Assembly (NCBI GenBank): GCA_050084985.1
Contig: JBITNC010000001.1
Coordinates: 53,940,001-54,004,000 of the forward strand
Origin: Nageia nagi
Lineage: Eukaryota; Plantae; Pinophyta
Reading direction: 5' to 3'
DNA: 64,000 nt
The translations under genes and the position numbers were made by a program. Below the pieces are notes generated by a model that had not been told where the DNA came from, did not search any database, and saw nothing but the letters and a program-made list of their open reading frames with translations. This document shows, piece after piece, positions 5,741-56,800 of this stretch (position 1 is its first letter; every line of letters begins with the position of its first letter).

Positions 5741-6099
5741 AAAGAATTTAATCTTCAATGGTTCATATTTTAATTTTTATTTCATAACATCATCGGTAGG
5801 TGAAGAGTTTTATTTCTCACTCCTCGAAGAAGAAAATTTCCTCACTTCTTGATTGCCTCATGTACTTTCCAAGTATAAAACCTTTATTTCTTTCTATAGG
5901 CATGTATATGAGTATTTAATGTTTACAAATTAGATTTTGAATTGTTAGGATTTGATTTTGTACTCTTTATTTGACTTTGTTGAGTGCCATTACTTCTATA
6001 ATTATTTTGGAGTATTAAACACTCAAATTATTATCAATGAACATATCAGGATTAATTCCAATTATATTATAACAAGTATTGTATTAATTTTTACACAAA

Positions 6100-33435: not shown

Positions 33436-34454
33436 ACTATTCTCATTTGTAAGAATAGAATGTATATGTTAAAAATACAACCAACTATAAATTATTTAAA
33501 TATCATAGTTTATATTACATGCTTGTGGCATGAAAGCTTTAAATACCTCAATTTCAACTTATTGAGTGGGATGAAAAAGCTCATGAAAGGTATATCCACA
33601 ATTTCACATCCTTTAGATACTTTGTGTGAAAGTTATATCTTTGGAAAATAACACTAGGATAAGTTTTCCCATCACCAACATAGGGATAAGAAGCCTTTGG
33701 AATTGATGCATGCTAACATTTGTGTACCTATGCAAACTCCAAGCTTCAATAAATGTAGGTATAGATTGATTTTTACTAATAATCACTCTAGAATGAGTTG
33801 GTTGTATTTGTTGAAGGCTAAATCATATATATTTGATTGCTTTTTCAAGTTCAAGGCACTACTAAAGAATCAATCTAGTTACCCTATTAAGAAATTTTGG
33901 ACTAATAATAGTGGTGAATTCATTTCAAATAAGTTCAAAGAATCATGCAACAAACATGGAATCAAGTGAAAATATACAACAACCACTAGACCAAAAAGGG
34001 CTATTCGGGGCAATTTGAAATTGTCACCTAATATATTTTTTGATGGTTATTCACCTAAAACCTATGAGTTCACCATTAAAAGTCCCCTCTCTATGGAAGC
34101 AGCTAACAACCATCAATATATATACCTAAAATTGTTATTTAATGTAAAAAAGAGGCATTTATAAATCACCTCTTTATTGACTAATGAGGGTGGCTTAAAC
34201 TATCACTCAACCCATCTTGTTATTCTTTTACATGGTGGTTTTAATTATCCCTTTATGATTTTATATGATGGTTTAAAACCATCATATAGTATTTTTTAAT
34301 GGCATAGTATGGAAGCATTATTCCAAATGGAAGAATGCTTCCAAGCTAGTCCATCCTTAGTTGGCTAAGGCATCCAATCCCAATCATAGTAAGCCCAATT
34401 ATGATGTTGGCCATGGGCTCTCAAATAATGGACAAATGGAGTTAGCCACTCATC

Positions 34455-34457
<3 letters not shown>

Positions 34458-34494
<37 letters not shown>
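34458..34494. repeat. (TA)n microsatellite
   Basis: About 18 TA units. Confidence 0.95.
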
Positions 34495-34497
<3 letters not shown>

Positions 34498-34529
34498 AAT
34501 AATGAAAGATAAAGGCATGTTCATGATAA

Positions 34530-34815
34530 GTGCACCATATGATATAAAATGATCCAAATGCAGCAACATATGATATAAAGCTATCAAAATGCACCATCAT
34601 ATGATATGAAATGATCCAAGTGCATGATATGATATATGAAATGATCCAAGTACACCATATTTGTTTAAAATAATGCAATTGCACCATATGCTATGAAATC
34701 AACATATAATATGAAATTCATCTAAATACACCATAGTGTCTAAAATTATGCAACTATGCCATATGATATGAAATGATCTAAGTACATCATATGATATGAA
34801 ATTATTCAAATATGC
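34530..34815. repeat. Degenerate tandem repeat, unit about 28-35 bp (atatgatatgaaatgatccaagtgcacc), in the CACTA left arm
   Basis: About eight diverged copies; a related copy at about 44503. Confidence 0.75.
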
Positions 34816-35601
34816 TTTACAATTCTAATTATTTCTCAAATGATTCAAATATGCTCTACAATACTACTACCACAACATTCAATTTATAAGAACCAAGTAG
34901 ACACATCCATATTCAAATATGTTCTATAGTTTCAATTATTTCTCAAATGATTCAAATATGATCTATACTACTACTACTACAACATTCAATTTACAAGAAC
35001 CAAGTAGACACACACACCCAAGAAGAATTTTTTGAAAATTTGAAATGGAACATAAAATCTTATAGACATGTATGCAAAATGTGGAAGATACATGATGCAA
35101 ACATAGTTTCATGAGTACAACAAGGATGCCAACTTAGCACTTTGTATTGGTTTTTGACACTTAGAAATTTTTTGGGTTAAATAGTTGTTTTCCTTCTTCA
35201 AGAGAATTTATGGATTGAACAGTTGATTTCCTTCTCCAAGCTAGTTTTTGGATCATATGGTATATTTAAATCATTTAATATCATATCATAATTTATTTTA
35301 TAAAACTTTTCTCATACAATCTAGGCAATGAAAAAGCCCACAAGTGATAAGTGATACAAGCAAAGGTATTAGGTAGAAGAGAGGAGAGGTGATATGAGGC
35401 AATTACAATTATACTATATGACTTAAAATGATTTTCCCTATATACATATGCATAGATGAAGAAAAATATTTTATACCATGTCTAGTAGGTGATTCTCAAG
35501 ATAGCTAGCATGAGCCACAACATTTGATTTACAAGCACCAAGTACATACATGTATACACCCAATCTAATATTTATAGGTATTTTGGTAGTGAAGTTCAAA
35601 G

Positions 35602-38600
35602 TTAAGGAACAAGCTTATAAGACTAAATTCCTAATAACCAAGATCACATGAAAGCTCTCTAAAACGTCACTACATTTTCATGAAAACAAAGTTAATCTTA
35701 TAAAGTTGATACCAATATAAAGTGGTTCCTACAACCATGGGAGTATATAAAATATTATAAGATATCATTATCAAAGAGCACCCTCTTACAATTCATTTTC
35801 TTATTTCTCCTACAACCTAAACAAGAGCATAAAATTTCTACAAACTTAAGTAACTAATCTCAAGTAGAGGGCCTTCTATTTATAGGAAAAACTCCTCCCT
35901 TGAATCACCCTATTAACCAATGTACAATATCATGACATGCATCACCTTTTTACCCAAGGGGCATGCTCTTGAGATGGAGTGTAGGAAAATTTACATTATC
36001 ATATTCATAAATACTTAGAAGGTATCTATGGATACTTTTAAGTATTAATGAATTTACATTATCATATTCACTAAATACTTCAAGTATTTAGGGATAGCCT
36101 TAAGTATTAAGTGAATTTACATTAAGATAACTAACAATAATGCATTATGCATTCCAACACTTCCCTTTAATAAAATATTAAGGTAAAGCAAAGAAGAAGG
36201 GAAGAAAGAGAAAGTAAGAAAGATTTCTCCTCCATAGAGATACAATCATAGATGAGGACATTTACATCTTTGAGAAATAAGTAAGATTTTAAATTGAGAC
36301 TCACTATTTTACCATTTGAAAAACTAATTTATAATACAATTATTAATTGTAACTAATTTCACTATACAAAGTAGTCATTCAACAATAAGTTGACGTGATG
36401 AGCCTCCATAAATCTACCCAAGTTCAAAGTAGATGACTTGCACTCTTAAGAAGAAACTTGCAAGCTACAAGTAGCTTATTAACAAGATTAGTTAGATGCA
36501 TCATATAAAAATTCATATCAATATAAGATAAATCAATCAATTAATGCTATCCTTAAACTGATAAATGGTGCACTATAAGTCATCATGAAGATGTCAAATT
36601 GATATTCATAGTCACCTATTGTATAGAAAATATGTGTTGATCAACATAAAAATAAATCATAAGAACATATGAGTTCCTCGCATATGGATAACTTAATAGT
36701 GCTAAAAAGCACATATTGGTTCTTCACATATGGATAACTGAAATAGTGCTAGCAAAAGCTATTATATACTCAAACCATATACAACTAGTTCCTTATATAG
36801 AGTGAACTAACCATGAAGATGTACATAAGGATACCATCTAAGATTCCCTAAGATTACTGAACTAAGCTCTAGGAAGAAGTTTGGTGAACAAATTAACAAA
36901 GTTTAGAATTGATGGACAATATTGCAATTGTAGGATACCATCTAGAACCTTCTTCTTGATAAAATATGCTTGTATTTCAACATATTTTATTCTCTAATGG
37001 AACATAGGATTCTTTGCCAAAATAATATCTAACTAATTATCTAAAGAAATTTGAGATAGGTGAGCTTGCTCATACCTAATTTCTTTCAAAATATGCCTCA
37101 ACCAAATGGCTTCTTGGTTTGCAACTGACATTGCTTGATATTCTTCCTCGATGGTGGAAAAAGTAGTGGTAGGATACTTCTTGTAAGCCTAAGAGATAGC
37201 ACCTAAACTAATTTTAAACATATAAGAAGAAAGATCATTCCTATAACATACATATAAGAAGAAAGATCATATCTATCTCCTCTATAGTCAATTTGAGTAC
37301 CTTGAGAGAACAAATGAGGGCAACTTAGAATACTAGAGAGAAAGATCATTCCTATAACATACCTCAAGATTTGCTTAATAGTATCAAGGTTCTTATAATA
37401 TGGTTTCTACATAAAGTATGCTATAATATTTACTACAAAGGTAATATATGGCCTATAAATATTTAAATAAAGAAGACTACCAATTAATTGTAGTAAGCAA
37501 TGGTATCTACCAACTGAGAGTTGGATCTAAGATAATGAGAGATTCCAAGAGAGACAAGGATTGTAGTAAATTTGCACACCTCTATTCTAAACTTTTGCAA
37601 TATATATGAGATATACTTGGATTGACTAAGGTAAATACAATCCTTGTATTGGTACACTTGCATACTAAGGTACTAGTGTAAGAGATTAAGATCAATTATT
37701 TCAAATATTACCTTCAATTTGGATATGCACTCTTCGATAATTTTATCATTATTTTCTATGATCATAATATCAACCACATAGAGAAGAATCAAGACCAGGT
37801 CTTATCCTTGATCAAGGACCTATAGATCTAAATTGAAAAAATAATTAAAAAACCTAATTTTTGCAAAATATCCTAAGATCTTTTTGTACTAAGCTCTAAG
37901 TGCTTGCTTAAGTCCATACAAAGACTTATTTAGTTTGCAAATAAGAGACTCTTTTCCTTTAATAACCAACCCTTATGGTTGATACATGTACATATCCACA
38001 TCTAAGTCACCATTGAGAAAATCACTTTTAACATCAAGTTTAAAAACTTTCTATCCTTAAGCTACTGAAGGAGCAATGATTTACCTAATGATGGAAATCT
38101 TTACCATTGGATAAAAATCAACTTTGTATTTCTAAGCAAAACCCTTAACTACTAACCTTGCCTTATATTTCTTAATTTTCCCAACTAAATTGTATTTGAC
38201 CTTGTAAATTCACTTATTGGTAATCATATTTCATTCATTGGGATATGTAACCAAATCCCAAGTTTGATTTTTTATTAGAGCCTCATACTCCACTTTAATA
38301 GCTTCCATCTAGCATTCATGCTTCAAAGCTTATTTGAATGATGAGGGATCATTCTTTCTATCAATTTTAGAAAATAAGGATTTGTTTAAGGTCATACTTC
38401 TCATTATCATTTGTGTTGGAGAGTTTTTCTCCTAAGGTGACTTATCTACACTAACATACAACTAGTTAGGTGTAATAGAAGAGTCATAAATATCATCTAA
38501 GTCCTCATAAGAAGCATATTCCTCAGGAAGTTCATTTAATTTTACATCCCTTGAGATAAACATTGGTCTAGAGGAAGGAGATTAGAGCATGTAGCCTTTA

Positions 38601-41600
38601 TGCTAACTACCATAGTCCATAAAGATGCACTTTTTAGATCTCTTTTCTAGCTTCTTTCTTTTATCAAAAATAATGAAGGCATAAGCATCACAACCAAAGA
38701 CCCTAAGGTGAGATATGTTAGGTCTCTTTCTTTTCCATGCCTCATATGGGGTTTTACCTTAAACTAGTTTCATAAGAAACCTATTCAAGATGTATATCAC
38801 ATTGTTTATAGTTTCACCTTATAAGAAACTAAGGAGATTTACCAACATGTAGCTAACCATTTCTTGAATGGTCCTATTATTCCTTATATCAACACCATTT
38901 TACTAAAGGGTGTAAGGGATCATGAACTACCTCTTGATCTTGTATTTGGAATAAAAATTATTAAATTCATTGCTATTATATTCACCCCCATTATCAGATC
39001 TTAACATCTTTATTTTGAAGTCAGTTTGGTTTTCAACTAAGGCTTCAAAATATTTGAAGTTGTCAAAGGTTTGATCCTTGTGCTTGAGAAGATAATGAAA
39101 TGTCATCCTACTAAAATCATCGATGAAGGTTAATATATAAGAAGCTTCCCTAAGATACTTAGTCTAAAATAGACCCATCAAATCCAAATGCATAAGTTAA
39201 AGAGGTGGTGTTGCCCTATCTTTCTCAACTTTTTTCCTATTCATCTTACCTAAGATGCACTTCTCATAAATATTAATAGTGGGTGATATTTATAGAAAAT
39301 CTTCCACAAGTTCTTGATTTTTCATAACTTGAATACTCTTGTGGTTAAGATATCATAATTTATGATGCCAAAGATTCTCCCTATAGAAAACATTTGTAGC
39401 AAGGTACATCTTTTTTGGCACTTAATCTATAATGCAGGGATCATCTTTCATTAATCCTTTCACTAAAGTGGTAAGTCTCTTCTTAATGCACCAAAAGTGT
39501 GAGTTGAACTCGAAAGAGAACCCTTTCTTTGCAACTTGAATTATGAAAAGAAGGTTCATACTAAGTTTAAGCACATATAACATATTTTTTAAGAACTTTT
39601 TCATGTATTAATACACTCCCAATCCTTTGAACTTCAAGGATTGAATTATCACGTATCATAACTACATCTTTTCTATACTTATGAAAAATTTCAAACTTGA
39701 CCTTTTCAAAACACATGTGATTAGTGCAACTAGAGTCAATAATCCAATCATTCAAAAAAGTATGAGACTTGGAGTAAAAACCATAAATAAAAGTAGATTT
39801 ATTATTCTTTTTCTTACCTTTGAATTTGTTTGGTTTTTCATATCCTTTGCCACCTTGTTCTTTCTTTTTCATTTAGCAATTTGATTCCTTATGATCATAT
39901 ATGCCATAGAAATTACAATTTCCATTAAATATGGATTTGGATTTGGATTTATCAAACTTTTTGTGGCCATTGTAATTTTTGTTTCCACCTTTCTTGAAGT
40001 ACTTTTTTAGATTATGAGATTTCTATTGATTGTGGAACTTATTTTTGAAGTGAGTCTTTGTTGGTCCAAGTGCCATAATATGCTCCTTAGGAGTGGATAT
40101 AAATAAATGTTTTTGAGAGTTTCCTCATGTTTCAAAATAAATCATGAAATATTTTCCATAGAGTACACTTCTTCCTCATCATTGAGTCTTATCTCAATAA
40201 CTTTCATGAAGTGACTAAATCTAGAAGAGAGACTTTGAAGGATGATCAATACCATAAACTCATCTTTGATCAAATTATGACCACACTCAATAGGTTAGAT
40301 CCTAAGATCAACAATATTATTTAATTATATTGCAATGTTTTCATTTTTCTCTTAACATGATTGCAATAATTTTTGAAGAATGGATAACCTCCTTGAGAAT
40401 TTGGAGCTGAGGTAGATTTTCTTCAGCCTATCCCAAGCTTCTTTTGTAGAGTTTGAAGAAGAAATCATAAGAAAGACTTCATCTAAAACTATACAAAAGA
40501 TCATATAAATTTTCAACTTGTTCTTTGTGTTGTAAGCTTCAAGTGTCTTCTCATCTATTGAAACAACTTAATTTTCATTTACCTTCTTCCATAGTTTCTA
40601 TGCTTGGACCTCTGGTTTTATCCTAGGTTCTAAAATATTGTAGTTGGAACCATCTAGGATGTGCTTGGGTTTAAGGGAGTCTCCCATTTACTACACAAAA
40701 GGTGAAAGTGTTAACCAATGTAAGCATGTTAAATTTTAAACTAAATTAATCAACCATGTTGATTTTAACCATACATACATGTTGAGATTTGTTCAAATTA
40801 ATTAATCATTCATATTTAAATTAATCAATCATACATGTTAAATTTTGACCACGGGTAGTTAATAAGGTATGCTTAAATTATTTAACCAAGTTCACATAAG
40901 CAAAAGGTTACAATCAAATCAAATGATATATCCCATATTTATCATAACCAAGTTACATAGTTGTAAAGAGGGATAAAGTTGAGGCTTGTTTTCTTGTTTA
41001 AAATTAGGCCTTCACCTAGATGCCCGCATGGAGCCCAAGTCCTACATACAATTCTTAACTAGTTCCCCTTGGTTAGTAATATACTTTCACAAGGAGTACT
41101 AACTATTTTCCAAGGGTGTGATGTATATTGGATCGGCCAAATTATTATCTTAATTAGGTTTCAAATTTTCCTTCTATGTTATCAGGATAATCTTTGAATG
41201 GACATGCAGACATATGGTATCAATAAATATATTTTTCCACCTATATGGAGTTATGTCCATACCATCATAGGACTTAAGGGTAATTAATAAGTATGGAATG
41301 TATACCATTTGGATTTTTTATATTGAAGGCTCCAATCTACCTTGTCCTCTCCTTATGGCTCCCCAAATAGGTCTGTTACATAATAAATATTTGGATGTGT
41401 TCATTTTAAGAGGTGCACTTTTAATATTTACAATTTATTTGTAAAAATAAAAGCAAAGTTCTTAACACAAAGTAAAGTTATTAAAAATGATATATCATCT
41501 CAAAAAAGAAACCTAATAGTCCAATAGGTTTTGTTACCAACCCCAAGAGGACCTCTTTACAATGCACGAGTTCATTATTTTTAAAAATGGAGTCTCATCC

Positions 41601-44072
41601 ATTTTACTTAAAATTTTAACTTTAGCAAATAAAATGTTCCCCTTCAACATTTAAAAAGTACTTAGGTAAAACTATCATTGTAATTTTTCATTAGGAAAAA
41701 AAATGAACTTTTAACACTAAGGAAAAAAATTACCACATTTGTACCATAGCAAAAAATTAATCATCCCTTTGCAATTTTACCTTAGAGGAAATCCAATTCA
41801 CTAAGGAAAAATAACACCACACTTAAAAAATTTCTCTTAAAATTTTCTCCCCTCCTATTTTTAAGATTAAAAAAAAATCCCCTTTTTAAAAAATTTAACT
41901 CCTTAAAAACTTATCCTCCACCCATCCCTTTCTTTTAAAAAAAGGATAAGGTGTTATTACTATTATTTTTTAAAAAAAGTAAATTTTCCTCAAAAATGGT
42001 ACATCACCCCATAAAATAATTATTATCATTTAAATAAGGTAAATTTAATGATACACCATTGAGTACAATTAACCCATCCACCAGTCCTACAATAAATTAA
42101 AGAGGAGTGCACTTATCCACTAAATGTAATAAGCAAAACAAAACATGCACTCAAATCTATGTTGCAAGAAAGAGGGGTTAAAACTAATTTACATAGAAAA
42201 AACCATCTTCCCATTTTAAAAAAACTTAAAATTCTATGGGTGCTAGCAGGGGAGTATGGAGGGCAAGGTGACATAGTATCAGGGCATTAAATGGAAATCA
42301 TAAGGTGGAGTTCCACAATGGTGTGCAAGTTTTTAAGCCACAGTTGGGTAGAGTGTTTCAACCATCAAGGATATAGGAGTTGAATATTAGTGGGGAGATG
42401 GGAGGAATGGAAATGGGTGAGGCTAAGACCTTAAGGGGATGCATATGGGTTGGGATGATCATGGTGTAGAGAGGAAACAAAGTTGGAGGCTATACAGTCA
42501 GTTGAGGTGATTTGCAGTAGTCATTGAAGGTGATGGATGGATATAATGTGGAAGGAATAGGGTTAGCACTTATGAGTGGGGTTGAGTGGAGTTACAAGCT
42601 TGATAGTGTCTACATTGGTTGGTCATCAATTTCCACCTTCCCTCTCCATCTCTACTCATGGAAGCGACATCATTTTGGATTATCACTTTGTAGTGGGTTG
42701 AGGAAGTTCCATAGAGGTGGGACAAAAGGGAGATAGGCCACCAAGGAGAGGTTAATAAGTGGGGTGATGTTGAGAGGTATTGAGCCACAAGGGTTATAGG
42801 TTAGGAGCATCAACTTAGAGGGCATCGGATGGGACTGCAATCCAATGGGAAAAAATGGTGGTGTGTTATCGCTTTGTAGGGGGTGGATAGGTCCCCCTCC
42901 TTTATATTTAATTTTCTTTAAAAAAAACTTTATTATAGTTAAAATATATTTTTTAATCTATATATATTTTTTGAATATAATTGTCCCTCCTTTTTTATTA
43001 TTTATTTTGAAATGAAATATTTTCAAACAACTAAAGTCCCCCTCCTCTTTTGAAGAAAAACTTTTACATTGTAAAAAATTTAAATGATTTTGAATTTATT
43101 TAAATGTAAACAAAGTTATTACAAGACTACAAATGTGTAAAAAAAATAGTATTTTTTTGTACACAACCAAATCTAAAAAAATTGCAAATTTAGTCAAACT
43201 AAATGCTCCTAGTAATATATTGTTGTTACATTCTATTTTAGGCAAAATTTTATCCCAAAACAAATTGCAACTACCATAAAAAGTTAGTAGAAAATTGTAA
43301 CAACAATATATTTTAAGCAAATTTTCTCAAGAAAATTGCAACTAACACATAAACAATGTTAATAACTCATGAGGTAAAAAAATAGTCTTGAAAGAAGAAG
43401 GAGAAAATTATACCTTAAAATATTTTACCTCACCAAAGGAGATGGAAGAATGAGTAGGATGAACCTTCAAGGATGTTGAAGATGAACCTCCAAGTATGGC
43501 GCTAAATACCAATTGAAGAAACAAGCCTACAAGAATAAATTCCTAATACTCAATATCATATTAAAGATCTCTAAAATATCATCTAAATTTCATGAACATA
43601 AAGCCAATATCATAAATTTGAAACTAATATAAAGTGATTCCTTTAACTATGGGAGTACATCCACTAATCTAAGATCTTATTCTCAATTAGCATTCTCTTA
43701 CAATTCACTTTCTCACTTCTCCTACAACCTAAAAAAGAGCATAACTTTGCTACAAACTTGAGTGAGTATTCTCAAGGAGAGGGTCTTCTATTTATAGGCA
43801 AAAATCCTCCCTTGGATGATCATATTAACCAATGTACAATATCATTATATGCATCACCGTTTTTACCCAAGGGGCATGCTCATGATATGGAGTGTAGGAC
43901 AAGTTACATTATCATATTCATAAATACTTAAAAGGTATATAGGGATAATTTTAACTATTAGTGAATTTACATTACCATATTAACTAAATACTTAAGGTAT
44001 TTAAGGATACCCTTAAGTATTAAGTGAATTTACATTAAGATACCTTACAGTAATGCATTATATATTCCAACA
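35602..44072 (-). mobile_element. Full-structure degenerate Ty1/Copia element nested in the CACTA
   Basis: Perfect TSD CAAAG (35597-35601 / 44073-44077); LTRs 35602-36159 and 43514-44072; PBS-like sequence at 43497-43511; PPT complement cttcccttt at 36160. Confidence 0.95.
36850..40687 (-). pseudogene. Copia gag-pol remnant (gag, protease, integrase, RT, RNase H)
   Basis: MGDSLKPKHILDGSNY start; WIIDSSCTNHMC protease; LTFIDDFSRMT and LRSDNGGEY integrase; LDVKSDFLNGDL and LLYVVD RT; LAKNPMFH RNase H. Many stops. Confidence 0.92.
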
Positions 44073-44077
44073 CAAAG

Positions 44078-44130
44078 CTCCCTCAAGATAGCTTGTGCGA
44101 TTGAGTAGGTCAACAATTCATGTATAATAA
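44078..44130 (-). pseudogene. PPR S2/E1 fragment, continuous with 35490-35601 across the Copia insertion
   Basis: Rejoined minus strand reads YYT*IVDLLNRTSYLEGALNFTTKIPINIRLGVYMYVLGACKSNVVAHASYLE. Confidence 0.85.
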
Positions 44131-45159
44131 TTAATCTTACGAGTGCAGGATATGCACAAAATGAAATATTGTAGAGATTGTTAAGCAAGTGCAATTGTTA
44201 GGTGTAAAACTAGGTACATGATGAAACACTATACTTTACAAAAGTATCAAAAATTAGTCCAAAAGTGTTAAGTTGGAAAAAAAATGCTTGTAATACTTAG
44301 CAAATGTTCAACCTAGAAATTTAAATTTTATGTTGTTTTACCTTCACAACAAGATATCTTTCTCCCAAGCTAACCTATTTAAAAAATCATGAATTAGATA
44401 ATTCAAGGCTAGCTACATTTAGAAGATCTCAATAGATGTATCATCATTATACTTCAGCATTGTTCATGATGTTATCACACAACCAACCTATATGCTTCAA
44501 ACATATGATATGAAATGATACAAGACCATCAAATGATAAGAATTGTGAACTTTTAAGAAGATGTAGGATGTAAGGTCTGGGAATTATTTGACAAGATGTA
44601 TGATGCAAAATATAGTTTCATTGTCTGCAATATCTATAATGATTTCAAGATACTTGTTACAAAATGACATGTATGCAAAATTACATGTAATGCAAATTTG
44701 CTCTACAAGCATTAAGTAGACACATTTCAATTTAGAAGCACCAAGTAGATAGATCCACGCATCCAGGTAGCATATTTTGAAAGAAAATGAAATGGAACAT
44801 AAAACTTGATAGACATGAATGCAAAATGTGGATGATGCATGATGCAAACACAATCTCATGGATTGTAATGGTTAGAGAAAATTCAATTCATGGCTACAAC
44901 AAGGATGCCCTTAAACTCTGATCTAATGAACCACTTGGGAACCATATATTTTTTATATTTTGGCTAAGTACTACAAGAATGTTTTTGTCAACTTATCACT
45001 TTTGGACTTATTTTTGATACTTAGAAAATTTTTGAGTTGAACAATTTCTTTCCTTCTCCAAGCTAATTGTTTGAGGATATGATGTATATAAATCATTTCA
45101 TATCATATCATATAGTGAAAACCAAAAAAAACTTCATATCACATCATATGGTATATTTT

Positions 45160-45235
45160 AGTAGTGAGTTTCAAAGCTCCCTAAAGATAGCCTACATGAC
45201 CAAGAAGGTCAACAATGCATGTATAATGATTAATC
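45160..45235 (-). pseudogene. PPR S2 motif fragment
   Basis: Minus strand reads RINHYTCIVDLLGHVGYL*GALKLTT. Confidence 0.85.
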
Positions 45236-45699
45236 CTCCAATTGTAAGATATGTAATTCATGGATACAATAAGGATGTAAAATTCATATGATGTATTTAA
45301 TCAATTACACATCACATGTTATTATTTAAATATAATCATAATAAGATTCAAATATGTTCTAAAATTATGCTCAAATAATTTAAATATGCTCTATAGTTTC
45401 ACACATTACTCAAATATTTTAAATATGTTCAACAATATTGCTACATCTAATATTTTAAGATAGGAAAAAAACTTCTTTTTAGGGCCAAGCAATAAAAGAG
45501 CCACATATATTTTCTTGTAATGTTCCATAATTTCCACATGGTCTATACAACTTGACACACACTTTATGAATAAACCTCACATTGAATTTAAAATAATTTG
45601 GACCCAAAGGTACATGATGCACTATATCCTTAGGGTTATCACTAAACTATATGGCATCAGGCACTACTGACTATCTCCATTTAGTAAGTAGGATTTTCT

Positions 45700-47700
45700 A
45701 TTACATTTGTAAGTTGGTATCATTCACAATCTTGCATGAAAAAATAACAACCCATATAAATACACTGCATAACATCTAAGTTCATAGTTTTAAACTTGAG
45801 ATCATAGTGATCATACCATATCTAGTAAGCCTTGGTTAGCACCTACAAAGTTTATGTTTATGCTTTGATCTACTTGGGTATCCTATTTTGCATTGGCCCA
45901 TGCAATTATGTACAAGGAATCATTACAATTTAGGAGTGCAACATATGAGCATTTCAAATATGAAATCATGAACAAACTAACACACCTTTATTCATGAATC
46001 CCAAAGTGTCACATCATGTATCTTTTATTCATAATCTTCCCAAATAGTTACAATCTTTTCCTCCATCTCCTCTTTAAGTGTTTCCTTTATTTTTTCTAAT
46101 TTGTTATGCATGTGGAAAATTTCTACCTTACAACCATTTATAGTAATCATATCAGTTTGTAATACATCTTTGTCAATGCCTCAAACTTGACCCACTCTCT
46201 TGAGTCCTAAAACATGGGTAAGGGAATCATCCATAATATATTGATTTACAGAGCTTGACTTAGTATACGATATTGCATTATTTTGGTAATATCACATGCA
46301 TAGTTAACTTGGAACATATTAGAAAAATGATTGATAAAATAATTTTTGAATTTAATATTTCTAAGGGAATTAATATTTTTGAAGTAACTTATGGTGACAC
46401 AAAAGAGCCATCCTTTTTTTATGAGCTGACAACTACACAGATACCCTAGGTAGTGGAATATTTGCATTTGGCTGGCTTTGCCTTTATAATATATATAGTT
46501 GGAGATACATGAGGATAAATATATGATAAAACAATATGGTATAATAGATGAGTATGATAGAATAGCACTTTCATAGTCCAATTTAGCATATATTTTTTGA
46601 TCGATAGTGTGCATGACATGGTATTGAGATCTATTTTTTTATTCCTTTGCCTAGCCATTTGCAACGAAATAAAGGAAATAATATAGTAATTTATTAGAGA
46701 GAGCAAGGTGAACTATAAAAATCTCATGAACATAAAAATGATATGAAATACCATCACTTAATGGCTATTACTTAACACAAAGTTATTTTTGCTCCTCCTT
46801 TTCACAAAGGCTTCTTAATCTTGTACTAGTAGATAAGGTGGGGGTTTAACAATTATATCTTCATCATTGTCATACTTATCATAATGTAGTTTCACTAGTC
46901 AATATTTATTATCACATAATAATTTGCCAATGGTCATCATCATGCATTTCTTTATATTATTTATAATGTCACACTTTTGCTACATCAAACCATTATCTTA
47001 TTAGATTGCAATATTTACATAAGTATTCAAAAATGGACACTATAAAATATGTTGGCTACTAAGTTACCTTAACCATTGTCCAACACTTATTTTTAACATC
47101 TTTTAAGACTTATTTCCAATCTGTATAGGTGATAGGGACAAGCTCCCTTGCTATTACCTCCCAAAAATATGAAAAGTACTTTGCATTATTTCCAATAGGT
47201 TGTCCAAACATATTGGTCTTGACCTCCATCTTATCTATTTTTCTCTCCCTTAAGTGTCAATCTTGTGGAACCTCTCATTTTACGATGTGATGGTGTTACA
47301 TCAACATGTATATAAGCATTATCATCCTCATTATGCAAAGCATTATCACCATCATTTCCCAAAGCATTATCATCCTCATTTCCCAAATCATTCTCATCCT
47401 CATTGCCCAAATCATTCTCACCCTCATTTCCAAAAGCTTTCTCACCCTCAATGACCAAAGCATTCTCACCCTCATTGCCCACAACATCGTCAAACTAATT
47501 TGCAAAATCATCATCAAATTAATTGCCAAAAGTATTATCACTTACAACATCCCCATTTGATTCAATTATGTTATGACCTGCATCTTTATCAACTTTGTCA
47601 ACCCTATAACTCTATCATTTTTTAATGATTGAAGTCACTAGATTCTTTTTTGAGACATCCCTCAATACCAGTTGTATTTTTCTTTTGAAGTTTTTTTGGG
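45700..47700 (-). pseudogene. CACTA TnpA/ORF2-like (Ptta/En/Spm, Transposase_24-type) remnant with introns
   Basis: RGSTRL...NMFGQPIGNNAKYFSYFWEVIARELVPITYTDWK...CWTMVK followed by a GT donor (about 47067); YAKLDYE (about 46580); DSLTHVLGLKRVGQV*GI (about 46175-46230) matching DxLxxVLGxExxGRVRG. Confidence 0.8.
47316..47485 (-). repeat. 24-bp coding tandem repeat (GNEDENAL-type), about 7 copies
   Basis: ORF 47231-47482 shows an 8-aa acidic repeat in frame with the TnpA N-terminus. Confidence 0.9.
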
Positions 47701-47744
47701 TACCTCTAGTCATGGTAATTTCCAACTACAAGCATATACTAACA

Positions 47745-49135
47745 TTGATAAATAAGTTTTTGCATCGAAGTATTATGAATTCCTTGATAGGCATGTATGC
47801 AAAATATAGAAGAATACATAAGGCATGATGATTGTATAACAAGATGCAAGCAAAGATAGTTTTATGGAATGCAATGATCATAGGATATGTACAAAATTAT
47901 TTTTTTTAAAAGGCTTTATAGAATTTTAAGTAGATGCAATTATCAAATGTAAAGCTAGACTCTGTAACCTTTTACAACATTCTTCCAACATGTGCCACCA
48001 CAAGAGCTCTAGAAGAAGGTATGGACATCTATCAAAGAAAAGTTAAAAATGGTTTTGCATTGAATGTTGTCATTTTTAAAGGCCTAATAGGCATGTATGA
48101 AAAATATGGAAGAATAAACAAGGCCTGAGAATTGATTAACAATATGTAGAGATAGTTTCATGGAATGCAATTATCATAGGATATGCAAAAAAAGAGTTTT
48201 ATGAAAAGGATCTAGAGACTTCTAATTAGATGCAATTGTTAGATGTAAAGCCAAACTCTATAACCTTTGCCATCAATCTTTCATCATATGCCACCATGAT
48301 AGTGCTAGAAAAAGGTATGGACATACATAAAAGAGTAGTTCAAAATGGTTTTACATTGAATGTTGTGGTTATGAAAGCCTTGATAGGCATGTATGCAAAA
48401 TGTGAAAAATACACAAGGTTTGAGAATTATTTAATAAGATGCATGATGCATATATAGCTTCATAGAATTAAATGAATTAAATGTGTCTATGTGTATACTT
48501 GGTGCTTGTAAATTGAAGATATACCAATTCCAAATCACTAATCAAAGATATATTCTTAGTACACATTCTAAATAGATCCAAAACCTTCTTCTTCTATTCA
48601 TATTCATAATTTGAATAAATATCTTGCTAGAAGGTCTTTAATATATCTAGATATGTACTAGAAATTCAAATCCATGTACTATCTCACTTCGTCTCCTCTC
48701 ATCTTGTCTCTACAAAATGCCTATTCTCTCCTTTATCCCCTTTTCTTGATAAAATATGGAAGAATATATAAGTCTCAAGAATTATTTAACAAGATGCATT
48801 ATGCATAAATAGTTTCATGGAATGCAATGATCATAAGGATATGCAAAAAATTGGATTTTTGAAAAGGTCCTATAGACTTTTAAGCAGATGCAATTATCAG
48901 ATGTAAAACCAAAATTTGTAGCCTTTTCGAACATTTTTCTAGCATGCGCCACCACAAGAGCTATAGAAGAAGGTATAGATATCCATCAAAGAGTAGTTGA
49001 AAATGGTTGTGCATTGAATTTTGTGGTTATGATAGACTAGATAGGCATGTATGCAAAATGTGTAAGAATATGTAACGTCTAATAATTGTTTAACAAGCTG
49101 CATGGTGCAGACATAGCTTCATGGAATGCAATGAA
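47745..49135 (+). pseudogene. PLS-class pentatricopeptide repeat gene fragment (about 3 S-P-L triplets), frameshifted
   Basis: NSLIGMYAKYRRIHKA, VSWNAMI, MQLSNVKLDSVTFYNILPTCATTRALEEGMDIYQR, VKPNSITF, VVMKALIGMYAKC. Filler sequence at about 48480-48750. Confidence 0.92.
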
Positions 49136-49254
49136 TTGGGTGTGTGTACTTGGTGCTTGTAAATAGAATGTTGTGGTTTGTGTATGCTATCTTGAGGAAG
49201 CTTTGAACTTAACTAAAAAAATACATATAAATATTAAATTATGTATGTGTATTG

Positions 49255-52200
49255 TTAAAATTTTTATAAATGTTGATGGATTATTTGCCACATTGTTACT
49301 TCCATATTAGGAAGTTATATTCATGTTGATGTATTGTTTGCCACATTACTACTTTCATTTTTGAAAAGTTTATCCTTGCTAGAAAGTTTTAGTGGATGGA
49401 ATGGTTAAAAATGTTCATTATTCTCCATGAATACAAATTTATGGAGTGGTTAAAAAGGTTTTTCCTTCTCCAAAATCATAATTTTTTGTATTCAAACCAT
49501 TTTACTTCTATTATCAAGAAGTTTATCCATTATGAATTAATGCCAGTTTACTCCTATTGTTGAGAAGTATGTTTATGGATTGATGGAAATTGAATCCATA
49601 ATCTACTCTTCCTTCATATGCACCTTGACTAAGTGGCATAATTAAGTTGGCATTTTGTGGCTTGTGCATCTTGACTTGTGGCATAGTCAAGTTGGCATTT
49701 TGTGCCTTATGGCATGCAAATCTTGACTAGGTGGCATAAGTCAAGTTGGCATTTTGTGGCTTGTTCTTCATCCAAGTATAATATTGTTGTTGGAGATCTT
49801 AAACCTCTAATTCAACATATTTATAAATGGATAAGAACATATGCATATTAAGGTGGCATTTGATGCTTGTGGCTATGCATCTTGATTAGTGGTATGATTA
49901 AGTTGATGTTTATCGCTTTGCATATTAACATGTGGCATGGTCAAGTTGGCATGTTATATTTTGTGGTATATGCATATTGAATTATGATCATTTTATTTTG
50001 GTCAAGTTGGCATTGAAAATAATTTAAAATTCTTTGCTTGAATCATAATTAGTGTAGTATGATTGGAAGTGTAGTATTAAATGAAAATTAGTAAAAATAA
50101 AAGAATGATCCTCACATAGCTGATAATATTAGGCCACATCAACTATAGGAACATTCATATTATACATAATAAAATCCTTATATAAGGATTACCAAAAATC
50201 TTACATTTGAAAGTTGCAGCTTAGAAAAATGCAAGACAAAACTATTAGTGCATCTCAAGTCTTATAAAAAGATTAATTTCAAACTAATTCATCTTATGAT
50301 AACTTTGACCTTTTCTTATCTACTTAAGCATAAAGGTAAAATTCATGAAATAGTTTAATAACTTGGTAGAAAATTAAACCAAGAATAAAAATGTTAAGAA
50401 TATAATTTCAGCAATTCATAATCTCATTTACCCCATAGGGTCATGACTATATGCATGTTTAAAAATCTTTCCAAGTCTGTTTTAGGTAAAATTATGAATA
50501 TCATTATCTACACCTTAAGGTGTTCAACCAAGGTAGTTAAAACAAAAATTATTTATGAGGGATGGATAGAAAGAATCTTTATATCTCTCTTCTAAGGAAT
50601 TCTTGTTGTGATAATTTTTAGAAAGAAGAAATAAGTTAAAGATTATAAACTCTCTCCTTCTTCAAAAACAATATTTTTTTTAAAGAGAAGTCAAGTGAAA
50701 AAACCTTGAAGACCCTTCTCCAATAGACTCAAGAATTTGGACCTCATATCAAATGAGTCATCTAAAGACCAAACTTTTTTATAAAATAAAAGGCAATTTT
50801 TTTAGTCATACTATAAAGTAAATTGTGGTACTTGTATAGTTATGTGTACACTATTTCAAGTTACCAAGTATTCTATAAAAGTACAACTAATTATCTATCT
50901 TCTTGCAATACAACTTTTAATATGTCTCTCCTTACCAAAATTGAAGGTCATGTTTAAGCTTCAAACATTAAGGAGGTTTTTAAATATTCTTTTTGGATGG
51001 ATGCTACAAAGATAGAATTTGAGGCTCTTATGAAAAATGAAACTTAGGACTTAGTTTCATATCCAACTATAAGGAATGTAATTGGTAATAATTAGCTTCA
51101 CAAGGTTAAGTACAACTCAAATGGTAAAATTGATAAAATATAAGGCAAGGTTGGTAGCTAAGGAACCTACAGTTGATTATAAGGAAACCTTTACCCTAGT
51201 TGCAAAGATGACTACAATAAGACTTATCATTACCCTTTATGTAGCTAAGGATTGGAAGGTGTTCCACCTTGATGAGAAGAGTGTTTTTATCAAGGTTACT
51301 TAAATGTTGAGATCTGCATAAGTTAGCCTAAGGGATTTATAATGTCTAGAAAAGAATCTCATGTGTGCAAACTAAATAATTCTTTGTATGGATTTCAGCA
51401 AGCACCTAAAGCTTCGTATGAAATGATTTCAGGATACTTTAAGGATAATGGGTTCTCAAAGTACCACATGGATTCATATTTATTTTTGTTAAAATAAGGA
51501 AAAGAATTGGTCTTTATTCTTCTCTATATTAATGATATTTTGATTACAGGGAATAATATGATAATCATCAATGAGTGCATAGCCAAACTTAAGTTAGAAT
51601 ATGAGATGTTTAACCTTGGTCTCTTGCATTACTACCTTGGTATGCAAGTGTATCAAAAATTATGTAGAAGTTTGGAATGGAAGAGTGAAAGCCTTTTGCT
51701 ATCCCATTTTCCCCTAAAACCAAGCTAAAATTGAATATACTTCAACATATAGGAAGTCTTCTATATTTGATCATCTCTAGGCTAGATATTACCTATGTAA
51801 TTAATATGATGATAAGGTTTATGTAGAAACCTTATGATGAGCATCTTCCTACAAATAAGAAAATATTAATATATATTGAGGGAACTATGAATCTCTCCCT
51901 CAAATATAATAAGTTACCTTTTGTTGCTCTTTCAAGTTTTTTATATGTTGACTATCGAGGATACAAAGATAATAGGAAATCCACCTCAACTTATATGTTC
52001 AACATTGGTTTATGTGTTATCTATTGGTATTCCAAGAAGCATCATATTTTCATTACATCCACCATAGAGGCACAATATAGAGCTATGTTAGTTGCATCCT
52101 AGGATGCTATTTGGATTAGAAATATGCTAAAAGAAATTGGGATTGAATAGTCAGCTCTTACTAAGATCTCCTTAGATAATCAATCAACTATTGCTTTAAC

Positions 52201-52930
52201 TAAGAATCCTACTTACCATAAGAGAATAATGTATGTTTAAATCAAAGCATTTTTTTTATCAAGGAAAAGTTTTAGATGGCACTCTATATCTTCAGTATTG
52301 TCCCTCTAACTCTATTGATTTTCTCACTAGACATCTCCTGGAAGCTCAATTTTGTGAGATTAGGGAGTCTATTTGGTTGGTAAAGTTGCTTTCAAAGAGA
52401 GTGGAGTTTTTAATTCATGTTTATGATGTCAACTTCACCCCTAGGAAGATTTTTTAGTTGTATGAGTGTTGACCTTTGTTGGTGTTGATCTTGTTTATGC
52501 ACTTTGTTTCATCTTAGTGTGTACATTTTTTTTATACTTAGTTCTCCATGTGTGATGAACTTGTTTGTACACCTTAAGAATATATTGTGAGTACTATGTA
52601 GTGATCCATGTGTGAGGAACTAGAATGTGCATATTTTATATTATATACTTTAATGATGATCAACACATGTTTATTTATACAATAGGTGACTATAGGTTTG
52701 ATTGACATCTTTGTGATGAATTATAATGCACAATTTGATCAATTTATGTATGGAAGTATTTGATTCATTTATATTATGTTGATATGAATTTATGATGCAT
52801 CTACCTAATCTTTTTATGATCTTCTTGTAGCTTTCAGTTTTCTTCTAAGAGATTGCAAGTTACTTACTTTGGATATGCAAGCTCATGGAAGCTCATGATG
52901 TCAACATATTATTGAATGACTACTACTTTT
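49255..52930 (+). mobile_element. LTR-less Copia internal fragment (hairpin repeats, integrase scraps, RT-RNase H, 3' UTR) inside the CACTA
   Basis: YKARLVAK, LLYINDILITG, DNRKSTSTYMF ORFs at 51082-52457; 3' UTR similar to 29770-30360 and (inverted) 36370-36800. No LTR, PBS or TSD seen. Confidence 0.85.
49622..50015. repeat. Hairpin tandem repeats (cttgac...gtcaagttggcatt), same family as 29100-29352
   Basis: About six copies in two clusters. Confidence 0.85.
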
Positions 52931-52931
52931 A

Positions 52932-53220
52932 CATCACTACCAAAATACACAAATAGTGAATTGGGTATGTGGATGTGTATACTTGATGCTTGTAAATCAA
53001 ATGTTGTGGTTTATGTAGGCTATCTTGAGGGAGATTTAAACTTCATTGATTAAATACCCATAAACCCTAAATTAGGTATGTGGAAGTGTCTACTTGGTGC
53101 TTGTAAATTAAATATTATGGTTCATGCAGGCTATCTTGAGGAAGCTTTGAACTTCACTACCAAAATACCCATAAACCCTAAATTGGTTGTTTGCATATGA
53201 CTACTTGGTGTTTGTAAATA
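52932..53220 (+). repeat. 111-bp in-frame tandem repeat derived from the PPR S2-E1 junction
   Basis: tgtaaa at 52991, 53102 and 53213; reads ...MWKCLLGACKLNIMVHAGYLEEALNFTTKIPINPKLVV...; another copy at 49138-49250. Confidence 0.9.
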
Positions 53221-53244
53221 GAGTATTATAGTTGTGAGTTTCAT

Positions 53245-53600
53245 GATACACAAGACCTAGGATATTTTTAACAAATGCATAACACAAATATAGTTTCATA
53301 GTCTGCAATGATTAAACAATACAACAAAATGGGTTTTCTAAAAATTAAAGGCCCATAGACACATGAAAAATAAGATCACAAACTAAAATACTAAAATGGT
53401 TTTGAAAATATGCATGATACTAATAAAGTTTAAGAGTATGCAATGATTATGTGATACACAAAATGGGTTTTCTAAAAATTAAAGGCCCATAGATATATGA
53501 AATATATGGAATATTAACCCAAGACTTGGGATTTGTTTGACAAAATGCATGAGAAAAACATAATTTCATGGTTGTAATGATGAAGGATTTATGAGTTTTC
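53245..53600 (+). pseudogene. Short scrambled PPR S/P motif fragments
   Basis: WDLFDKMHE, NIVS*SAMI and QNGFS-like pieces repeated; similar pieces at 35055-35115, 44578-44630 and 44805-44875. Confidence 0.7.
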
Positions 53601-53752
53601 TAAAAGAATGCAAAAAAATACAAAGCATAGATATTTAGAAGAATATAAGCTCATGGATGAAGAATATAAGATCACAAACTAAAATACTTATTATCACCTT
53701 ATCTTCCCACATCTCGCTTCATCTCACCTCATCCCGTCTCTAGTATCGCCTC

Positions 53753-53872
53753 CTCTCCTCTCATAATCCTAAATGCCCCTCTCTTCCTCCAAACTCCTTA
53801 GCTTGAAATGAAGAGAACATTCCTCTCCTCTCATAATCCCATGAAATGCCCCTCTCTTCCTCCAACTCCCTC
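53753..53872. repeat. Direct duplication of about 45 bp in the CACTA right subterminal region
   Basis: ctctcctctcataatcc...aaatgcccctctcttcctccaa occurs twice. Confidence 0.8.
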
Positions 53873-56800
53873 ATCTCCAAAAACTCAAAATGATAAGAAC
53901 ATTCCTAGTGCACCTAAGCTCCCCATGTGTGCCTTTTTATATTTTATTTTCATTAGTTCTAAGTGTTTATTGCTTAATAATTTTTTTTGGGGGCAATTAT
54001 TAACCATCACTTATTAAAACAAAAATTGGGGCAGTTAAAAATCATTGCTCATAAACTGCCTCAAATTATTCTTCCTCTAATGCTCTTTTTTGGTCTAGTG
54101 AACATACACTTATCAATAAAAATGGAGTGGTTGAAAGAAATAAAGAACAATTATTTAGATGGTTCGATGTATGTTGGAGGAGATAAGACTATCTAACAAG
54201 TTGTGGGGTGAGGTTTTTCATACTACAATGTATATACTTAATTATTATTCTACAAAGGTAATGCAATATTACACTCCCTTTGAAGCTTAGTTTAGAAACA
54301 AACCAAGTATCTCTCACATAAGGATGTTTTCCTCTACTTGTTATGTGCATGCTCCTAAGGAGAATAGGAAAAAATGGATGAAAAATCCATTAAGTGTATC
54401 TTAGTTGGATACTCTATTGAATCCAAATACTATAGGTGTTATGATCTAATTTCTTGAAAGTTGTATATTAGTTGGGATGTGATCTTCAATAAAGTAGGAT
54501 CATACAAAAAGGAGGATGATAATATTGGAATCACTATAGATTTAAAATACTCTAGTTATAATGAACATTTTGAGCCATTACAGCCCTAACAAGCCAACAC
54601 TCTAGAGGCAAGTTCACCTTCTAGGAAGAAAAGGATCACTAGGGATCATCCACAATCTTAGATGTTGGATAAATACTTCACAAGAAGGGTCATAAGATAA
54701 TAATCAAAGTAAGGTGGTCATTTAATTAATTATGCTTTGATGTTCTCTCTTTTGTTAAGCCTTCCAACTTCGAAGAAGCAATAGAAATTGAGTATTTAAG
54801 AAAGGTCATGGAAGATGAAATAGAACAAATTCATAATAATGACTCTTGGGATTTTTTCCTTCCTCCAAAAGGTAACACCATCATTGGTGTCAAGTGGATT
54901 TACAAGCTACAGTATAATGTTTATGGTAGTATCTTCAAGTAGAAAGCTTGCTTAGTGGTAAAATGTTATGCATAGAAATAAGGATTAGATTACGGAGAGA
55001 TATTTGCACCAATTACAAGACTTGAGATAGTCATATCTCTTCTAGCATTAGCTTCCTATTTTGATCTTTTTATTTAGTAAATGGAAGTAAAATTAACCTT
55101 TTTAAATGTATAATTAAATAAATAATTATATGTGGATCATCCATAAGGATTCACCATTCCAAAAATGAAGATAAAGTGTACATATTGAAGAAAGCTATTT
55201 ATGGGCTCAAACAAGCACATAGAATTTGGTACTCTAAAATTGGCACATATTTAGTGAAAGCCACATTATACACAAAGGTAAGTGGAACTGATTTCATCAC
55301 CATTTATTTGTATATTAATGATATTATATTCATGAGTACTTCCCATACCTTTTTGAAGTAATTTAAAATTGTCATGGTGAATGAGTTTGAGATGAGTAAT
55401 TTGGGTAAAATGGAATATTTTCTTGATATGCAAGTGAAACAGTCATCTAGTGGTATTTTTATCACTTAAACAAAATATGTTGAATACCTTTTGGTTATAA
55501 TTTCCATGAAGAACTACAAACCAATTACTACATTAATAGGTGTTAATTGCAAATTAATGAAAGAGGACACTAATCCTCTTGTTGATGCAACCTTGTACAT
55601 TTCTCTTGTTGGTAGTTTGATGTATCTCACAACTATAAGACTTGGTATTATATTTGTAGTTATTTTAGTAATGAGATTCATGCATTCTCCACATGAATCA
55701 TATTGGGAAGTAGCAAAGATAATTCTTTGGTATGTAAGTGGTACAAAAATTTTAGTTTGTGGTATAAACCCATTAATTTTGATAATCTTGAAGCATACAC
55801 AAATGTTTATTGGGTTAGAAGTATTGATTATTAGAAAAGCAAATCCAAATATGCCTTCTTTGATAAACCCTTAATTTCTTAGAGTAGTAAGCAACATATG
55901 GTTGCTCTTTGCATTGCTAAAGTAGAACATATGGTTTCCTCCTCTACTTGCATTAAATCCATTTGGATTGCTAGAGTATTTGAAGACTCGGGCATAAAAA
56001 TTAGCTAGCATAGTATAATTCGTTATGATAACACTAACACCATTGCAATGATAAAGGATCTAGTTTTTCATAGTCAGAGAAAGCATATAGACATTCACCA
56101 TCACTTTATAAGAGACTTAGTGAAGGATGAATTCATTGAATTTAAATCATGTAAGTCAAAAGATCAACTTACAAATATCTTCATTAAAGCACTAACAAAA
56201 TATTGATTTCTCAATCTTTAGAATCGAATTGAAATTCAAACCATTCACATTAAGAGGGAGAATGAACGAAAATGATGCTCCATGATTTGAATATTTAGAT
56301 TTTGACATCAACAATTTTGTCATATCTCTCTCTCGCCAATGGCTACTACCAGACTATTATTTCAATCACCCAGTTTAATTTTTGTTGCTTGAATGTAGTT
56401 AATATTGTAATTCTCACAATCTAATCTTGTTAATATCATATATTCATCTATTACAAGGACATGGGCATCCATAACTTCATTTATATTTTTTCTTGACTTC
56501 TTGGGCAAATTTTATCTTTTAGTCAGATTTTATTTAGTGTAAATAGTCAATCTTCTTGAAAAATATATGTAAAGGGATATTTTCCCTCATTTTATGGTAA
56601 TCTTGCATTTATTCTACAATAGTAATAGCAAGAAATATTGCTCTACAACTCTTTTATATGGATTTGTGGTGTGCTTTCTTTTCTAGGCATGTTTGTATAA
56701 GAAAACACTTGTATATCTTTGCATAAGTAATCTAGAGAAAAATGAATATGATATTCAACTATTGGTGTAATTTAAATAGGTGAGTATTTATTATTTTTTC

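Follow-up and report, generated by a model that had tools for sequence, protein, structure and literature searches.

The 64,000-nucleotide window analysed here (contig JBITNC010000001.1 of the Nageia nagi assembly GCA_050084985.1, positions 53,940,001 to 54,004,000 of the forward strand) contains, at window positions 33984-54100, a CACTA-type DNA transposon of 20,117 bp that carries fragments of genes for pentatricopeptide repeat (PPR) proteins of the PLS class. The locus is a three-level nest, in which a copia element holds the CACTA element and the CACTA element in turn holds another copia. CACTA (En/Spm) transposons are recognised by terminal inverted repeats starting 5'-CACTA, a 3-bp target-site duplication, sub-terminal repeats, in autonomous members a TnpD/TNP2 DDE transposase (Pfam Transposase_21), and a second gene of the TnpA type. 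The 14-mer CACTAGACCAAAAA has exactly two exact copies in the whole window, one at 33984-33997 on the plus strand and one at 54087-54100 on the minus strand, giving inverted ends that are exact over 14 bp; it is also found at the ends of two related copies described below (L001 and L005). Directly outside these ends, the trinucleotide AAC is present on the left (33981-33983) and again on the right (54101-54103).

The flanks (32800-33983 and 54104-56300) identify the host site as one degraded copia element, with an integrase followed by RVT_2. More specifically, the upstream flank reads ...SGEFISNKFKESCNKHGIK, that is ...HGIK, and matches Pfam rve with an E-value of 0.018 over profile positions 3-93 of 102. 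The downstream flank begins with NGVVERNKEQLFRW..., that is NGVVERNKEQ, and is followed by RVT_2 at 55122-55358 (E 7.8e-10). Joining the flanks after deletion of one AAC brings back the integrase motif order GIK...T.YT.Q.NGVVER; the continuity of this joined string was checked by reading alone. The matching ends, the AAC duplication and the restored host integrase reading together indicate that the 20,117 bp entered as one CACTA-type insertion, and the outline given by an earlier reading of the sequence alone (hereafter the sequence-only reading), namely a CACTA element bounded by terminal inverted repeats and a target-site duplication, is thus upheld. Beyond the 14-mer the ends are loosely alike. 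The motifs GGGGCAAT and GATGGTTA are found near both ends in opposite sense, and the right sub-terminal region (53728-54086) carries the motifs GGGGCA and TAACCATC in the sense opposite to that of the left arm. K-mers common to both arms beyond the end repeat were only weakly above shuffled controls, and 31-bp repeats are also present at 34532-34814.

The PPR identity of the cargo was established by protein comparison. A 64-aa stop-free piece (47934-48125) compared by phmmer with 1.84 billion representative proteins matched 3,677 of them at E<=0.001, the best at 5e-67 and with at most 12 matched stretches per protein. All of the matched proteins are many-repeat PLS-type PPR proteins, and the closest of those inspected come from Cryptomeria japonica, where they are annotated as PPR proteins, with 45-50% identity. 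A length-banded homologue search with the same piece returned no match and is uninformative on longer relatives. For mapping, 150 of the returned PPR proteins were used as tblastn queries against the 64-kb window (E<=1e-3). Matches were obtained at 44803-44918 (+), 45154-45387 (-), 47616-49322 (+) and 52970-53290 (+), with a best E-value of 4.6e-53; there was no match outside the element in the window and none in a reversed-sequence control. Shorter pieces at 35059-35085, 35522-35602 together with 44073-44156, 44572-44643 and 53401-53727 are weak when taken alone (E 0.02-0.5) and are linked to the stronger blocks by a nucleotide identity of 77-88%. In Pfam, individual short PPR pieces had no more than sub-threshold matches, and it was phmmer and tblastn that settled the identification.

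Both the presence of PPR pieces at about ten places and their character as rearranged PLS-class fragments (P/L/S triplets and S2/E1 pieces), as proposed from the sequence alone, are therefore borne out, the main blocks by these protein matches and the short ones by their nucleotide identity to the main blocks. The description of the element as built largely from PPR sequence overstates its share: by the strict threshold (E<=1e-3) PPR-derived DNA amounts to about 2.4 kb, or 12% of the 20 kb and about 30% of an approximately 8-kb family core, and by a lenient count to about 3.6 kb (18% and about 45%, respectively). Editing factors of the PLS class are ordered P1-L1-S1...P2-L2-S2-E1-E2-DYW, and the fragments match the P, L, S and P2-L2-S2 motifs and the E1 head of this order. 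Unlike such factors, the window copy has neither the continuous, ordered frame of a functional PLS-PPR gene nor any E2 or DYW match; its motif order is scrambled, its best protein identity is the 45-50% given above, and its evolution is neutral (see below). Every PPR piece in the window is broken by stops or frameshifts, the longest open PPR frame being 75 aa.

The largest block of the cargo is a degenerate PLS-PPR array on the plus strand (47616-49322), consisting of about four triplets of approximately 296-300 bp with stops and frameshifts. These units are 73-80% alike among themselves. Their identity was considered as a sign of duplication after capture, as against capture of a multi-triplet array, and was rejected as such: triplets within one Cryptomeria protein are 53-76% alike and the window units 50-58%. 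What does show post-capture duplication, and the only feature to do so, is a 420-nt block at 48101-48517 that recurs at 48751-49168 with 78% identity. Both occurrences include a chimeric, non-genic joint (48396-48520 and 49055-49171) at which the start of a P motif (SWNAM) runs directly into an E1 head (..VLGACK); since block and joint are present twice, the duplication followed the rearrangement. A 19-nt inverted pair (47297-47315/49315-49333) was also examined as the possible ends of a nested element and rejected, as shuffled sequence gave a mean score of 22 and a maximum of 37, against 33 for the pair.

Towards the right end, a tandem array of about 2.7 units of a 111-bp (37-codon) chimera occupies 52931-53233 on the plus strand. 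Each unit joins an S2 tail (GYLEEALNF..KIPINP) to an E1 head (W..LLGACK) and loops back into S2. The same unit is found in about eight copies in L001, about four in L004 and about six in L005. Within the window, the looped S2/E1 unit is also present inside the PLS array (49137-49249, +) and, in opposite sense, in the left arm at 34803-35012, 35495-35600 and 44726-44762. The tandem array is followed by short S/P-motif pieces (53265-53727, +; E 0.019; for example KTWDLFDKMHEKNIISW at 53521-53571), among them two units of about 135 bp at 53265-53506; these pieces are related to L005 3067-3600.

The left arm (33998-35600) combines the GGGGCAAT/GATGGTTA sub-terminal motifs and the 31-bp repeats with S2/E1- and S-derived pieces, namely 107-bp units with S2/E1-derived sequence (34803-35012, -), an S-motif piece reading LIDMYAKCG (35059-35085, +) and one half of a split S2/E1 piece (35495-35600, -). 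A (TA)n microsatellite lies at 34458-34486. The arm is duplicated, 34500-35600 resembling 44498-45450, and the second left-arm unit (44078-45450) holds the other half of the split S2/E1 piece (44078-44156, -) together with PPR pieces at 44172-44208, 44572-44643 and 44693-45014 on the plus strand and at 45154-45387 on the minus strand.

To search for further family members, the S2/E1-unit pattern was scanned against public metagenome contigs, yielding six plant-like contigs (L001-L006; GC content 0.29-0.32). One of them, L005, contains a second copy that is complete and measures 8,135 bp, with CACTAGACCAAAAA exact at position 2676 and the other end carrying one mismatch at 10797-10810, in flanks unrelated to those of the window. 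The two copies are collinear: window 33984-35601 aligns with L005 10810-9159 at 74% identity, 44104-48171 with 9132-5054 at 80% over 4,165 nt, 48045-49249 with 5486-4270 at 80%, 52931-53733 with 3873-3067 at 81%, and 53860-54102 with 2918-2674 at 68%. No break occurs in the alignment where the window copy has its nested copia, and the alignment passes from window position 49249 to 52931. The PLS array, the 37-codon S2/E1 tandem, the middle part and, on both arms, the S2/E1 pieces of opposite sense all recur in L005, with neither order nor sense changed relative to the window copy. The finding of a collinear copy in a different flank indicates that all of these components, including the S2/E1 piece inverted on the other arm, belong to the family. 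The order of the family body is accordingly a left arm with S2/E1 pieces, a middle without PPR sequence, the antisense PLS pseudo-array, the 37-codon S2/E1 tandem in the opposite sense, and the right arm.

Partial copies have the same components. L001, L002 and L006 represent one plant locus, with 99.99-100% identity in three JGI metagenome assemblies (Ga0068631, Ga0181467, Ga0115846); this locus is a shorter derivative in which a CACTAGACCAAAAA end is followed by the right arm, about eight S2/E1 units and then left-arm sequence. The samples concerned contain DNA of one AT-rich plant, probably a host or substrate plant. L004 is the right part of another copy, has a family end with one mismatch to CACTAGACCAAAAA, and includes an open piece of 102 aa in which P2, L2, S2 and E1 follow one another as in a gene (Pfam PPR, 2.2e-6). 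At 8189-8670, L004 has a second family end with the right-end sequence GTTTTGGTCTAGTG, again followed by AAC, with PPR debris beyond. Part of this debris, ...SWIEVDKRVHDFLVRDRSHLQTQETY, may represent an E+/DYW start (PF20430 at E 0.03, a sub-threshold match), a type of piece absent from the window copy. In L005 as well, PPR debris of the family lies directly outside both ends (2039-2662, 10828-10902 and 14611-14712). The debris beyond the ends of L005 and L004 fits a pattern in which family copies insert into or next to one another. Hence PPR cargo is carried by one complete and two partial further members, and the idea that other members might lack it, which would have made the cargo a feature of this locus, does not hold.

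Comparison with L005 also separates the family body from what is peculiar to the window. The nested copia long terminal repeat (LTR) retrotransposon (35601-44072, -; 8.5 kb) is locus-specific and absent from L005, and shows a Pol_BBD match (3.4e-11) and reverse transcriptase similarity. Its LTRs (35601-36160 and 43512-44072) are 85% alike over 559 nt, and its target duplication CAAAG is found at 35596-35600 and 44073-44077. It splits the S2/E1 piece mentioned above: on the minus strand, 44156-44078 gives ...NYYT*IVDLLNRTSYLEGAL, and 35600-35522 continues with NFTTKIPIN...VLGACKSN. A PPR piece split by a copia whose LTRs have diverged to this extent indicates that the PPR cargo is older than that old insertion. 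The second part not found in L005 is a 3.7-kb stretch (49250-52930) made up of high-copy 45-54-bp repeat units (GTGGCATAATTAAGTTGGCATTTTGTG...; 49393-49990) with many contig matches in four sequencing runs, a low-copy segment (50000-50990) and a piece of copia pol lacking LTRs (50996-52924, +; RVT_2 2.8e-9 to 1.6e-8). The repeat at 49393-49990 probably represents an independent insertion of a small repeat or transposon. The pol fragment is cut at both ends, abuts the S2/E1 tandem array and is 67-76% alike to 36370-38309 of the nested copia, in the opposite sense; it may have arrived as a truncated insertion, through deletion or by capture. On the simplest reading, both the nested copia and 49250-52930 arrived later at the window locus, though for the latter a loss in the L005 lineage may be the explanation instead. 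The copy thus landed in a copia integrase and then grew to 20 kb through the nested copia and the 3.7-kb stretch, more than half of it consisting of later retrotransposon and other insertions. Apart from the two retrotransposon parts, some 8-10 kb are left for the arms, the middle part and the PPR-derived blocks.

Between the second left-arm unit and the PLS array lies the conserved middle part (45482-47494, -; within the 80%-identity block shared with L005 5054-9132), to which the PLS array is antisense and which may be the remnant of a TnpA-like gene. It gave a sub-threshold match to PF03017 (TNP1/EN/SPM; E 0.051), and some of its motifs appear similar to those of plant En/Spm TnpA-type proteins. 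A 24-bp (8-codon) tandem repeat of seven or more units (47299-47514) stands at the 5' end of the TnpA-like frame, encodes an acidic GNEGENDL-type repeat on the minus strand and is kept in L005 at 5742-5900. Pfam scans of further window pieces and of the better-kept L005 frames returned no family match, a homologue search with a 48-aa window piece gave nothing, a 113-aa L005 piece matched only itself, and ESM Atlas searches added no support. A TnpA remnant, as suggested by the sequence-only reading, is thus plausible and stops short of confirmation, the PF03017 match being the sole support from any tool. The second statement of that reading on transposition genes, that there is no recognisable TnpD, stands: a scan of 91 stop-free pieces (38 aa or longer) gave no match to any transposase family, nor was Transposase_21/TnpD detected in the other scanned pieces. 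Such an absence is expected for a non-autonomous copy.

The family is abundant and old. Four sequencing runs (four organism labels) each contain between 11,119 and 50,243 short contigs that are at least 80% alike to 48200-54150, most of them 80-95%; contig depth is not a copy number, and the runs were used only as evidence of abundance and age. Loose contig ends run on as PPR sequence (for example ...CCCTAATAGACATGTATGC, that is ..LIDMYA), and backward steps of 106, 219 or 222 bases, or a forward skip of 354 bases, at contig joints represent copies with differing numbers of units. Coding constraint was assessed on 17 ungapped 37-codon units from four independent loci, counting differences from the majority sequence. 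Differences number 104, 83 and 68 at codon positions 1, 2 and 3, and single-base codon changes comprise 26 synonymous, 132 non-synonymous and 10 stop changes (22, 74 and 5% expected without selection). On these counts the 37-codon unit evolves neutrally. In addition, none of the listed sequencing runs in which the stretch occurs is on record as RNA. The PPR sequence is passive cargo that decays neutrally and makes no PPR protein, and the suggestion that the element could spread PPR motifs or supply new motif arrays is not supported, given the broken state of every piece, the shortness of the longest window frame, the unconstrained 37-codon repeat and the lack of an RNA run with the stretch.

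Taken together, the element very probably represents an old copy from a CACTA family of the En/Spm type that is non-autonomous and present in high copy number, has a body of about 8 kb conserved between copies, and captured part of a PLS-PPR gene as passive cargo. Under this scenario, a master element would have acquired sequence from the 3' half of a PLS-E/DYW-type PPR gene before the copies, now about 20% apart, diverged. The captured part would have comprised P-L-S triplets and a P2-L2-S2-E1 head, with an E+/DYW-start piece also present in relatives, and would occupy the place where an autonomous CACTA has its transposase. Illegitimate recombination and slippage may then have produced the chimeric joints, the tandem units of 111 bp and approximately 300 bp and the copies lying inverted on the opposite arm, and the element would have moved in trans via the transposase of autonomous relatives and multiplied.

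Several points weigh against this reading. No donor gene was identified, the best matches being the Cryptomeria japonica proteins at only 45-50% identity, and the analysis encountered no autonomous relative that combines these ends with a TnpD gene, which is why movement in trans is given here as an inference. L005 has no clean target duplication (CTT versus TAT), and the TnpA-like interpretation depends on one sub-threshold Pfam match and remembered motifs. Contig depth drops towards the element ends; this may simply come from the ends being less alike between copies (68-74%, versus 80% inside) but could also mean that the PPR repeats travel in other vehicles. The latter idea, that the PPR blocks are another mobile element or satellite (a Helitron, a miniature inverted-repeat transposable element or a tandem repeat) often found inside CACTA copies, gains from a summed contig depth far higher in PPR-like than in terminal bins and from the family PPR debris just beyond the ends of the L005 and L004 copies. 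We nevertheless regard it as very unlikely. The position and sense of the PPR blocks are constant in independent copies, the debris fits nesting of family copies, and contig depth, besides not measuring copy number, falls where the ends are simply more diverged. The sequence-only reading had named transposon termini belonging to the PPR pieces themselves, such as Helitron ends, as a finding that would refute its own proposal; no inverted ends or duplications were found bounding the array, and the best flanking inverted pair was no better than shuffled sequence. We consider it extremely unlikely that a plain CACTA landed here and PPR pieces were added at this locus by separate insertions or rearrangements. 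Such accretion would agree with the fact that more than half of the window copy (35601-44072 and 49250-52930, both absent from L005) is later, but L005 has the identical PPR block order and sense in an unrelated flank, the 37-codon chimera adjoins the same end sequence in L001 and L004, and one PPR piece predates the old copia insertion. The different flanks likewise argue against L005 being a segmental duplicate of the window locus.

A function for the PPR parts, whether as a source of new frames, as arm repeats bound by transposase or as inverted-repeat small RNAs directed against PLS-PPR genes, seems very unlikely to us. S2/E1 units do lie in opposite sense on the two arms of both the window copy and L005, the unit length is kept at 111 = 3 x 37, open runs reach 91 aa in L005 and 102 aa in L004, and in gymnosperms donor genes are reported to have higher exon methylation than genes never captured from (PMC13477047, 2026). 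On the other side, the 37-codon unit is without coding constraint and most units contain stops, the two arms are separated by 4-18 kb, with a complementarity of only 76-88%, and no RNA run on record contains the stretch. We likewise see only a slim chance that the transposon itself has co-opted the host-derived 37-codon S2/E1 unit, amplified in opposite sense on its two arms, either as an arm structure for the transposition complex or as a source of double-stranded RNA and small RNAs matching the conserved S2/E1 region of many PLS-PPR editing-factor genes; if this were true, small RNAs from S2/E1 units would link transposon silencing to the regulation or methylation of the PPR family.

The preferred reading, a capture of PLS-PPR sequence by a CACTA family, places the element among known systems. 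CACTAs with gene fragments include soybean Tgm-Express1, the Ipomoea Tpn1 family and elements of sorghum and maize, and En/Spm deletion derivatives have exon fragments in place of the transposase region. The window element resembles the Tgm-Express1/Tpn1 type in carrying host exon fragments between sub-terminal repeat arms. It differs in that those elements hold pieces of several unrelated genes, whereas the window element holds PPR sequence only, with a new 37-codon chimera in opposite sense on both arms. The closest parallel comes from the Pack-CACTA and Pack-TYPE transposons (PMC6379663, Catoni et al. 2019; PMC8903248, Gisby and Catoni 2022). As in Pack-CACTAs, the element is non-autonomous, with CACTA ends, a 3-bp duplication, no transposase and several rearranged fragments of host coding genes inside; as in Pack-TYPE elements, its cargo is common to several copies (complete in L005, partial in L001 and L004), that is, mobilised with the element. 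The neighbouring or nested family copies in L005 and L004 also fit the published capture model of tandem insertions that were then moved together. Unlike the Pack-CACTAs of Arabidopsis, the window element is much larger, belongs to a far more abundant family, and has cargo from one gene family only that was amplified in tandem inside the element. It may in addition keep a TnpA-like remnant, unlike a Pack-CACTA, and a filter on transposase hits such as that of packFinder could class it otherwise. No mobility of the element was observed. In sum, the element is a real but ordinary gene-fragment capture of a known kind, a Pack-type CACTA.

Gymnosperm genomes have been estimated to hold on average about 400,000 transposon-captured coding-gene fragments each (PMC13477047, 2026), and the window family represents one concrete case of this general pattern. 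The main text of that study has no occurrence of PPR and mentions CACTA only in passing, and our literature search found no description of this particular CACTA-PPR family. The family shows no sign of working PPR proteins and therefore has no direct bearing on the evolution of RNA-editing specificity. It does provide a clean, datable case of gene-fragment capture by a CACTA, with later tandem amplification and inverted spread of the cargo that have been kept between independent copies. As an abundant family, it scatters PPR-like debris across a giant genome, leading to inflated counts of PPR genes and pseudogenes and to false gene models unless this sequence is masked as transposon.

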